A stretch of DNA of 63,811 nucleotides, filler included, from Olpidium bornovanus S191 (Eukaryota; Fungi; Olpidiomycota): NCBI GenBank assembly GCA_017911155.1. It is 33 parts of 33 records of this genome, joined end to end, with 100 filler letters (N's around TTAATTAATTAA, not from the genome) between each part and the next. Parts side by side here need not be neighbours in the genome. Positions count along the whole stretch, not along the records: positions 42,244 to 45,017 come from JAEFCI010003406.1; 32 more parts are not named here. One strand, given 5' to 3'. A program made the position numbers and the translations under genes. The stretch's first letter is position 1. Each line of letters starts with the position of its first letter. This document shows positions 41,560-45,017 of the stretch, one piece after another. Under the pieces are notes generated by a model. That model did not search any database, was not told where the DNA came from, and saw nothing but the letters and a program-made list of their open reading frames with translations.

Positions 41560-42391
41560 CCAACAAAACGCAAGAAAGTTCCCTACTTGTGGGGAAGGGA
41601 GGGGCGGTGGGACGGGCAGTGGGAGGAGGGCCACGAACTCCGGGGAACATTCCCGGTTCAATTCCTTCTTTTTTTTTTTCCTTTTTTTTTTTCCCGCCCC
41701 TCTCAGCCGATCCATCACGTAAAGGCTACATCGCACATTAGGGGATATCATCGCCGGCCTGGAGTAGAAAGCTTCTGGTCTAACAATTCCTTCCTCCTTT
41801 TCTCTTCCCCGAATTTTTCTCTATTTCTCTCTCTGTCTCGTGGGCCCTCCATGAGATTAAATTAATCCATGTACTTATTCCTTTTCATCATACCATTTAA
41901 CAACCGGAGTCGACCCCGAGGCGGGGGTAATAATCCCGTGCGTTTTACGGGGTAAGAGGACGGCGGCGCACGCCCCCGCCGTTCGCGGCAGGAAAGCAAG
42001 AAAAAACCGGAAAAAAAAGGGGTGCGGCGTTCCTTTTATTTCTTTTTCTCGTTGTCGGGTTAAACACCAAACTTAAGCACTGGTTCGACCAGCGCACGCA
42101 AAACCCTAGGGTAAACCGTGGTGCCATCTCTGAGGGAGCGAAANNNNNNNNNNNNNNNNNNNNNNNNNNNNNNNNNNNNNNNNNNNNTTAATTAATTAAN
42201 NNNNNNNNNNNNNNNNNNNNNNNNNNNNNNNNNNNNNNNNNNNCATGCGGTGCTACAAGCCATTTCTGCTTTGGTCAGGCGGGCCGGCAATTATGTACAG
42301 TTACGATTGATGCGCGCTTTGAAATTAATTTCAAAGAGCTGCTAGGATATCATACAGCTTCCACCCACACAAATGCAGATAAAGATTCCCG

Positions 42392-43366
42392 CTATACACC
42401 AAAGGAGGCCCCGCAGCCGCAGCCGGTGACGGCCTTGGGATTCTTTGTTATGCGAAATGCCGAGCCGATGAGTTCCTGAATGTAGTCCAACGTGGAACCC
42501 TCGATAAATGGCAGCGACACCGTGTCAACGACGACACGAGACGCGTGCTTCTCGAACAGCCTAACATCGCCAAATTGTAAGTAGATAAACGTGAGCGGCG
42601 CATTTAGTACACCGGAAGCAGGTGAACGGCGGCCGGGCGCGACAGTTCAAAACCCACACATCGTCTTTTTCCAATTTCGTGGTCAACTCCAGACGGTACT
42701 GAAAACCATGGCAACCCCCGCTCTCGACCGTGATGCGCAGCGCCTGGTCCGGCGCTCCCTCCTTTTCCGCCAAATACTTCAATTGCTAGAGCGTCCGAAT
42801 TGGCCAGGCGCGTAGACCGCGACACGGTGACGAGCGGTCAAAGACGCCGAGGTACGGGAAAAACGGCCGGACAACTGTGAATCTTTCAGTGCTCCGCACT
42901 GGTCCGGGAAGAAGACTTGGAAAGTCCCAAACTCTGCCCCGCCCACCTTTGCAGCCTGGTCCGTGATGGTCAGCTCGTCGTCCGTTCCGATGCGCGATAC
43001 CGTGAACTGCGCGCCTCCTGCGGCGCACGGCGTCGCGGCGACCGTGGTGAGGGGAAGCGCAAACGTCGGCTGCGCAGCCCTCTGCCACGGACGCCCCGAG
43101 GACCGGAGGACAGCAAGCGGGCCCCACAGTGGCGACGACACCCGGCGGATTTTTCCCGAGCGGCAACAGGGCCGTTCCGCGCAAAACGGCTCCGGGCGGC
43201 CAGCTGTGCAGCATCGGGACAGGCCGGACGCGAAGCCACGGAGGAGAACGGCGACGCCCAGGGGTGACGCCGCTCTTCGAGCTGCCGCTGCCACTCGCGA
43301 CTTTGAAGCGGGCCGCGGCAGGAAGATGCGCTGCATCCGTAAGGCTGTTGGTGTGGTGTGACTCAT
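42392..43366 (-). CDS. ISA2: Mitochondrial A-type iron-sulfur cluster assembly protein Isa2 (complete)
   Basis: Exons 43366-42947, 42785-42658 and 42560-42392. Long presequence, then LTITDQAAK|QLKY...LRITVESGGCHGFQY...VVVDTVSLPFIEGSTLDYIQELIGSAF...GCGCGASF. Confidence 0.95.
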
Positions 43367-43703
43367 TCGCGAAAGCTGGCGCTGCCGTCCTACCACCCCA
43401 GGACCTCTGCTCGCCTGGCCCGCGCTTGATGCCGCTGCTCCTGCTGCTGCTGCTGGCGAGTCGCCGTATCGTCCAGTCAGAAAGGCATCCCGCGTTTTCC
43501 GTTGTGACGCGGCCAGAAGGCCGGGGAGGGTTGGCTGGTTTGTCTCATGGGAGCTGGTCCACATGCCGGCCGGCTCGCGGCTGGTCAGTCACGTGACTTG
43601 CGAACGGGTCTTGCAGCGCTCCCTCAACTTACACAACACTGATAACTTTTGACGACGGAGAAAACGCGACTGCCCGGCGGGCCCGAACCGCATGCAAAGG
43701 AAA

Positions 43704-44375
43704 TCAACAATTCTCCCCTCTGCCATCCCCACCGAATGTGCGGAAAATCAAACATCCGAAGTGCTGTCCGGTTCGGTTTGTACGCATGTTCCATGATCCG
43801 AATGTAGTCTCCAAAAACCTCAAGGAACTAGCAGGCGTTGCCGTCAAGCTCGGCCGGCTGCCTGAAGCCGTAGAAAGCGCCGCAGAGTCATATAATCTTC
43901 CCTGGCCCAGAATTTGCTGACAGTCGCACCCGGAGGAATCTGCAAGTAAGTTTCTTCCGGTGGCGTCCCATTCAGGTAGGCTGCAGCAACGTCTGTAAAC
44001 TCCATCTGTATTCCGTCGTGTGCTGCAAGGTGCGAAGCGCACCCTGAGCGTCACCAGGCAAACGACGGGTGCGAACGCCCCCGTGTAGTCGATACTGGTG
44101 TGGGAAAAACCGAGTGCAAACATGACGCGTTTTCCCATTCTTTGAGACTGCCGTCGGGGCAGAATGCTTGTGGTATAAATCCATCTGCTGCCAATGACCT
44201 TGCGTCCTGGAGGGAGATCGACGACGGGTCCCGCCCATCTTCTGTTCTGGGGCGTGTACGTCGAGCTCGTTCTCAATGACGTGAATGCAGGCTTTGAACG
44301 AAGGGCTACCCAATACGCCCCGAAACTGACTAGATCTCGCCAATAACTCACCGAACGCTGTTGGCTTCCTTGATG
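43704..44375 (-). mobile_element. Degenerate Ty1/copia reverse transcriptase relic (copy A)
   Basis: KPTAFGELL (EP-like motif), VVDLPPGRKVIGSRWIY, FALGFSHTSIDYTGAFAPVVCLVTLR: RVT_2-type motifs with deletions and frameshifts. Confidence 0.82.
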
Positions 44376-44390
44376 AAATTGAACATTGCC

Positions 44391-45017
44391 CACGAAATTG
44401 CCAAAATCGCCTCTCACCGAGGTGCCGGTGCTGAGCTCGAATTAAGATTTGGTGGAACGGATATGGTCCTGCTGACGACACCTGGGAGCCCGCCAAACAT
44501 GTTGATGGGCGCAATGATGAGATTCGATTATACTGTGCTCGCAAACACTTTAACTTTCCCATCGCTGCTCTCGCTTTCACTGCGACACTACCGGCGTATC
44601 CACCAGAACCTCGCAACTTTCGCTGACGCGATGCGCTTTCCACAAAGCTGGTCATTAAAGCGCAGCTGCTGAGAAGAAATTCAACAGTACGTTAGACATA
44701 GGCGTTTACATTCTGGTGTTGCCGCCACCCCATGTCAATATCATTAGTACCAAATTAGACACAAACTAGATGATGGTCACTCCGTCTAGAAGGATCGTGC
44801 TCGATGGGTAGCACGAGGGCTCTCCCAACAAGGGAATGCCCACTATGACATAACCTACATCCCCGTCGCTGCCTATACCTCCATTCACATCGTCCTCGCC
44901 ATGGCCGTTTGGAATAGTTGGATCATCTGGGCCAGCAACATTCCCGTCACGTGCCTACACACCCCAATTGACTCATCTCCTTTACGCGACTCAGCCCGAA
45001 GGCTTTTTCAATCCTGC
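44391..45017 (+). mobile_element. Degenerate Ty1/copia pol relic (copy B): chromodomain followed by the RT N-terminus
   Basis: [17 protein letters not shown] / (1-nt shift) [28 protein letters not shown]...PPEPRNF. Then ADAM..., EEIQQY, DIGVYILVLPPPHVNIISTK, RARWVARGLSQ, YDITYIPVA and YATQPEGF, with stops and frameshifts. Confidence 0.87.

Follow-up and report, generated by a model that had tools for sequence, protein, structure and literature searches.

Ty1/copia retrotransposons are organised in the domain order PR-IN-RT-RH within LTRs. A chromodomain in such elements was described by Llorens et al. in 2009 for the CoDi-A group of the diatom Phaeodactylum tricornutum (CoDi2.4, CoDi3.1, and CoDi4.1), whose integrase carries a putative C-terminal chromodomain (PMC2774666). 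An independent capture of this chromodomain was suggested, and chromatin tethering was proposed as its role (PMC2774666). In 2017, Ustyantsev et al. restated the chromodomain for CoDi-I and added Chronos, a gypsy group of oomycetes (PMC5348765). In gypsy elements, the chromodomain directs integration towards chromatin with H3K9 methylation, as shown by Gao et al. 2008 (cited in PMC6673714 and PMC3248453), and multiple independent chromodomain captures by gypsy lineages have been described for Ectocarpus. CopiaMBD, a Ty1/copia family of arthropods, captured a host methyl-CpG binding domain, which is proposed to guide integration (PMC6673714).

Chromodomain-bearing Ty1/copia elements have been known since 2009, and a fungal host would be new if the case discussed here is real. 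The searchable literature yielded no description of a fungal copia element with a chromodomain. The first-pass annotation of this locus had regarded chromodomains as a hallmark of Ty3/gypsy elements only. This view is out of date, since CoDi-A/CoDi-I copia elements carry them (PMC2774666, PMC5348765), and the novelty claimed for a chromodomain copia element was overstated, given the CoDi-A/CoDi-I elements of Phaeodactylum reported in 2009 (PMC2774666).

Source contig and feature layout

Olpidium is a zoosporic obligate root endoparasite whose genome assembly stems from non-axenic zoospores that were treated as a metagenome (PMC7865070). The window, i.e., the whole stretch of DNA, comprises 63,811 nucleotides from Olpidium bornovanus, filler included, and all positions count along it. 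Positions 42244-45017 correspond to one whole contig of 2774 bp from this short-read, metagenome-derived assembly (MAG). The contig consists of four parts, namely an ISA/HesB-like gene and a copia fragment on the minus strand, and a chromodomain and a copia pre-RT and RT region on the plus strand (Table 1).

Table 1. Features of the contig at positions 42244-45017 of the window.
Feature	Position	Strand	Remarks
A-type Fe-S carrier (ISA/HesB-like) gene	about 42387-43508, also given as 42387-43564	minus	Host gene; introns from spliced RNA-like contigs
Decayed Ty1/copia fragment	43847-44370	minus	Reaches from the EP-like motif to around position 107 of the RVT_2 profile
Junction window	44371-44390	none	Between minus-strand copia and plus-strand chromodomain; 5' truncation point of the plus element
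Chromodomain, N-terminal half	44391-44441	plus	Frame 0, 17 residues; aligns to MPP8 FEVEKIL...; carries the first cage position (His)
Frameshift, frame 0 to frame 2	44442-44443	plus	Affects a single residue within the chromodomain
Chromodomain, C-terminal half	44444-44533	plus	Frame 2, 30 residues; Pfam Chromo 23.1 bits (E 7e-5) by itself; carries the cage Trp and Tyr
Linker	44534-44599	plus	22 codons (24 with the two Pro of PPEP), stop-free, in the frame of the chromodomain C-terminal half
Copia pre-RT region	44600-44690	plus	PPEPRNF in frame 2, 1-nt shift at about 44621, C*EEIQQY in frame 0, one stop
Ty1/copia RT (RVT_2), N-terminal third, decayed	44701-45006	plus	Further frameshifts and a stop; contig ends at 45017

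The ISA/HesB-like protein contains the motif ...RITVESGGCHGFQY... and a C-terminal ...GCGCGASFGV. Its two introns, at 42560-42656/42658 and 42786-42946, are confirmed by spliced RNA-like contigs, with the splice joints 42559/42657-42659 and 42785/42947, both CT..AC. Alternative joints 2 nt apart occur in different runs (42559 to 42657 and 42559 to 42659), and only the joint from 42559 to 42657 leaves the last exon in frame. Exon 1 matches the NCBI protein BJ554DRAFT_6181 (P0065, 279 aa) of the Olpidium bornovanus MAG. This protein model looks mis-annotated, because it reads into the second intron and is without the last exon. The runs X1, X5, X7, and X13 share one species label. The small runs among them contain spliced Olpidium ISA transcripts at 99% or more, while the large WGS runs contain no read of the contig, which suggests that the label denotes a host or a mixed sample, not Olpidium itself.

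An assembly artefact would mean that reads of different repeats were misjoined and that the adjacency of chromodomain and copia RT exists in no genome. In favour of such an artefact, all 2774 bp of the piece make up one contig of a non-axenic, metagenome-derived MAG (PMC7865070), and its transposon part is without read cover in the runs examined. In the two runs containing part of the contig, the RNA-like contigs cover the ISA gene only and none lies over the transposon part; two WGS runs labelled as this species gave zero reads on the contig. However, neither a repeated k-mer nor a low-complexity stretch that might provoke a misjoin is present at 44533-44606, and the frame relations across the join are orderly. 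A misassembly is considered improbable.

The chromodomain

With the frameshift read as X, the chromodomain region 44391-44533 (+) matches the Pfam family Chromo (PF00385) with 27.3 bits (E 3.5e-6, profile positions 3-50 of 53), which exceeds the curated gathering cutoff of 25.1 bits. The best match among PDB sequences is the chromodomain of MPP8 (3lwe, E 8.9e-6), aligned over 42 residues and gapless, followed by CDYL, CDYL2, CBX3, and HP1. The X falls opposite a single MPP8 residue, which makes the break a plain gain or loss of 1 nt inside one codon. At the aromatic-cage positions of the MPP8 alignment the decayed copy reads His, Trp, and Tyr. Two of the three positions are kept and the first is His; the Trp and Tyr are aligned to what we take to be W80 and Y83 of MPP8. 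Judged by these profile and alignment scores, the chromodomain is real and beyond chance.

The best single-domain matches are P0028 and P0064, which represent the tail of a Termitomyces gypsy chromovirus (39.9 and 38.7 bits) and contain ...HPVFHVRLL... upstream of their chromodomain. The C-terminal half shares 59% identity with P0028 (counted by hand, 39.9 bits). The soil-catalogue fragment P0046 is also among the three best single-domain matches (37.8 bits). A gypsy chromovirus tail as the best match is in line with a chance chimera within a transposon graveyard. In this account, a deletion brought a short chromodomain-coding fragment next to an unrelated copia element that had lost its 5' part, and no chromodomain-bearing copia lineage ever existed. 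The chromodomain would then stem from a Ty3/gypsy chromovirus Pol tail, a host HP1-like gene, or another chromodomain transposon. Debris of gypsy chromoviruses is abundant in fungal genomes (PMC3248453), and the locus was chosen from a very large scan, in which rare coincidences are expected. Such an origin nevertheless requires that the gypsy or host fragment was trimmed on both sides to about 215 nt. Furthermore, the surroundings of the chromodomain contain neither gypsy IN/GPY-F or RVT_1 nor a stop codon or polypurine tract. Specifically, a Pfam scan detected no gypsy-type domain (RVT_1, rve, GPY/F) in any frame piece of 42244-45017, and no stop codon, polypurine tract, or LTR-like start lies 3' of the chromodomain.

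The copia fragment on the minus strand

The neighbouring fragment on the minus strand is a second decayed copia RT, which had been missed in the first-pass annotation. Its RVT_2 pieces are colinear, with 23.6 bits for profile positions 6-68 and 17.4 bits for positions 70-107. The minus-strand and plus-strand copia fragments lie head-to-head. Its EP-like motif, RKPTAFGELLA, occupies 44338-44370, which leaves 21 nt to the chromodomain start at 44391; the minus-strand fragment is also cut just before its own EP motif. Due to this short distance, the plus element is understood to be truncated right at the start of the chromodomain.

A foldback, i.e., an inverted duplication of two copia arms, was considered and rejected, as the DNA local score of 27 compares with 24 +/- 3 for shuffles and no inverted repeat is present. 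On the basis of its DNA, the minus-strand fragment is unrelated to the plus element. The chromodomain thus lies 21 nt from an unrelated copia fragment, which demonstrates that tight chance junctions do occur at this locus. This second junction of unrelated fragments, at 44371-44390, adds to the case for a chance chimera. In addition, a stop-free minus-strand frame of 239 codons (43975-44691) runs antisense to the chromodomain and linker, in the frame of the EP-like motif of the minus-strand copia fragment. It matches no Pfam family and is treated as chance.

The plus-strand reverse transcriptase and its continuity with the chromodomain

On the plus strand, 44790-45017 matches RVT_2 with 37.5 bits at profile positions 34-93, above the cutoff of 31.6 bits. 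The peptides of this region occur in colinear order, namely PPEPRNF (44600-44620), an 11-residue segment (44619-44651), EEIQQY (44673-44690), GVYILVLPPPHVNIISTKL (44701-44757), RARWVARGLSQ (44796-44828), and LLYATQPEGF (44977-45006). The pre-RT segment presumably represents the copia EP...W..A...E motif, to which it was matched by eye. The profile match and the order of the peptides identify the plus-strand domain as a real copia RT. By language-model features, an Atlas cluster from Bacillariophyta (one member with known phylum) is among the nearest to the RT piece 44790-44972, a very weak hint of an affinity of the RT to diatom copia elements.

The chromodomain and the copia RT lie on the same strand, and a single frame without stops (44435-44623, +) covers the chromodomain's C-terminal half, the linker of 24 codons, and PPEPRNF. 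The spacer from the chromodomain to the EP motif measures 72 nt (44534-44605), and the linker at 44534-44599 shows no recognisable homology. Near 44621, a 1-nt shift takes the reading into frame 0, as in the N-terminal half of the chromodomain. The N-terminal half and the RT segment after the EP motif thus share frame 0, and the second 1-nt shift undoes the first. The descriptive part of the first-pass annotation is borne out by these data: on translation, all peptides it quoted are present at the positions it gave, the chromodomain reads across one 1-nt frameshift, its C-terminal half runs without a stop into PPEPRNF, and a frameshifted copia RT follows.

In a simulation, a random 72-nt stretch was free of stops 0.37 of the time. 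Multiplied by the chance of the same strand (1/2) and the same frame (1/3), this results in a probability of about 0.06, a coincidence that a chance chimera requires. Both breakpoints must also fall within 72 nt, with the copia element cut within 24 codons of its EP motif. For a single ORF, only the truncation on the left, which falls at the chromodomain's edge, has to be a coincidence. In view of the arguments on both sides, a chance chimera is regarded as less likely than not, and as the main rival of the single element.

The plus-strand copy at 44391-45017 is disabled by at least five frameshifts and two stops and is without integrase or LTR. A Pfam scan of frame pieces and a repeat check revealed no rve, protease, RNase H, or LTR in 42244-45017, and no target-site duplication was found for the plus-strand element. 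The present copy is dead and non-functional. Disabling changes amount to 1 in 77 codons of the chromodomain and linker and to about 6 in ~129 codons of the RT, a difference that is not significant. The same data that suit a chance chimera also suit a one-off capture, in which a local rearrangement fused a chromodomain to a single copia copy that never transposed; this would be real DNA without a lineage, and the in-frame fusion is compatible with it. On the other hand, these data fit the chimera and a true lineage as well, and chromodomain and RT are not significantly different in their decay. A one-off capture is deemed very improbable, even more so than a misassembly. Taken together, chance or a one-off chimera is a quite possible origin of the locus, though not the favoured one.

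Search for relatives and further copies

A 63-aa piece comprising the chromodomain, linker, and EP motif was used as the query of an exhaustive HMMER search against 1.84 billion representatives, which yielded 63 matches. Among the 61 matches scanned with Pfam, 58 contain Chromo, 16 Chromo_shadow, and one PIF1. RVT_2 or rve was found in none of the 61, and none of the matches extends through the linker. The top match, P0001, was dismissed as low-complexity noise. The other significant relatives, apart from the gypsy tail, are host-type chromodomain proteins, which again is compatible with a chance chimera.

Further collections were searched as well. A scan of JGI metagenomes returned ten loci, all of them host chromodomain genes or gypsy chromoviruses and none with the copia layout, and no relatives were detected in IMG/VR or in GTDB genomes. 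Exact-protein look-ups of the ORFs of the window and of P0046 gave no record. Feature searches in the ESM Atlas retrieved only short clusters with either Chromo or RVT_2. In a word-indexed protein search, P0046 retrieved only itself and the RT piece nothing. A second copy or relative that combines chromodomain, linker, and RT was present in none of the collections searched, which likewise favours a chance chimera.

P0046 originates from a soil catalogue (SRR5207253) and is a 101-aa fragment with a chromodomain of 49.5 bits in Pfam. It starts with VVFDE, and the chromodomain begins 27 residues later. We take VVFDE to resemble the conserved ...RDVVFDE motif that follows the copia integrase core. 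Pfam gave no placement for the N-terminus, and the likeness of the tail after the chromodomain to the linker region was discarded as not significant (p about 0.34). The Atlas clusters nearest to P0046 are from Zoopagomycota and Mucoromycota. P0046 may possibly be an IN-chromodomain fragment of a copia element from a soil eukaryote and serves only as a lead.

A proposed chromodomain-bearing copia element as the best explanation

The best explanation of 44391-45017 (+) is a remnant of a chromodomain-bearing Ty1/copia lineage, a reading that is probable by a modest lean. The plus stretch would be the 5'-truncated, frameshifted remnant of a single Ty1/copia Pol gene, in which an HP1/MPP8-type chromodomain sat between integrase and RT, 24 residues upstream of the EP motif. 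From the copia gene order, the chromodomain would be assigned to the integrase's C-terminal end. As only 24 residues separate it from the EP motif, it may instead form the N-terminal end of the mature RT. While the ancestor was alive, the chromodomain would have been set free as part of the integrase C-terminus or, with lower probability, of the RT N-terminus. By binding the methylated tails of histone H3, it would anchor the integration complex in heterochromatin, i.e., H3K9-methylated chromatin, in the manner of a chromovirus.

The layout of CoDi-A/CoDi-I provides a precedent, which is counted for the single element. The first-pass annotation had proposed such a lineage, and part of its case stands: chromodomain, linker, and EP motif are read on one strand in a single frame free of stops, and the piece contains no gypsy domain. 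Against the single element, the copy is the only one, is decayed, and has neither integrase and LTR nor a target-site duplication, the searches for relatives were blank, and the best single-domain match is the tail of a gypsy chromovirus. The low prior for a chromodomain-bearing copia element in fungi also counts against it. The annotation had named a gypsy fragment or chimera as the outcome that would overturn its proposal. This idea retains the gypsy chromovirus tail as best match, but the piece contains no RVT_1, rve, or GPY/F. The wider claim, that Olpidium (Olpidiomycota) once hosted an active Ty1/copia element with an H3K9me-reader chromodomain between integrase and RT, independent of CoDi-A, is put forward tentatively, with somewhat more doubt than belief.

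As a single dead relic, the locus changes nothing that is established, and its main value lies in showing where to look for further copies, namely in Olpidium and its relatives. If the wider claim is true, the locus would represent the first chromodomain-bearing copia lineage in Fungi and a further case of convergent chromatin-reader-guided integration outside Ty3/gypsy.

Comparison with known systems

MPP8, CDYL, and HP1 (CBX), which are readers of methylated H3K9, provide the closest solved structures, and their Trp and Tyr cage positions are kept in Olpidium. In contrast to these proteins, the Olpidium chromodomain has His at the first cage position instead of Phe or Tyr, its frame is broken, and it is accompanied by no chromo-shadow or host-type partner domain.

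CopiaMBD resembles the proposed element in being a Ty1/copia family with a captured chromatin-reader domain. The reader domain and the host group are different, and CopiaMBD is intact, multi-copy, and functionally tested.

CoDi-A/CoDi-I share with the Olpidium fragment the assignment to Ty1/copia, with the integrase after the protease and before RT in CoDi-A/CoDi-I, and their putative chromodomain lies between IN and RT, which is the place proposed for that of the Olpidium element. The hosts differ, with a diatom (stramenopile) on one side and a zoosporic fungus on the other, and the Olpidium copy is a dead fragment without integrase. If intact copies confirm the reading, chromodomain copia elements would be extended from diatoms to an early-diverging fungus.

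The chromodomain of the Ty3/gypsy chromoviruses (e.g., Tf1 and MAGGY, and fungal tails such as Termitomyces P0064) is of the same type. In these elements it ends Pol after RT-RH-IN, preceded by ...HPVFHVSLL... at the end of GPY/F and followed by the Pol stop. In the Olpidium fragment, by contrast, the chromodomain is followed in frame by RVT_2, gypsy domains are absent, and a minus-strand copia fragment lies 5' of it. If confirmed by intact copies, it would offer a fungal copia system to set beside the gypsy chromoviruses.
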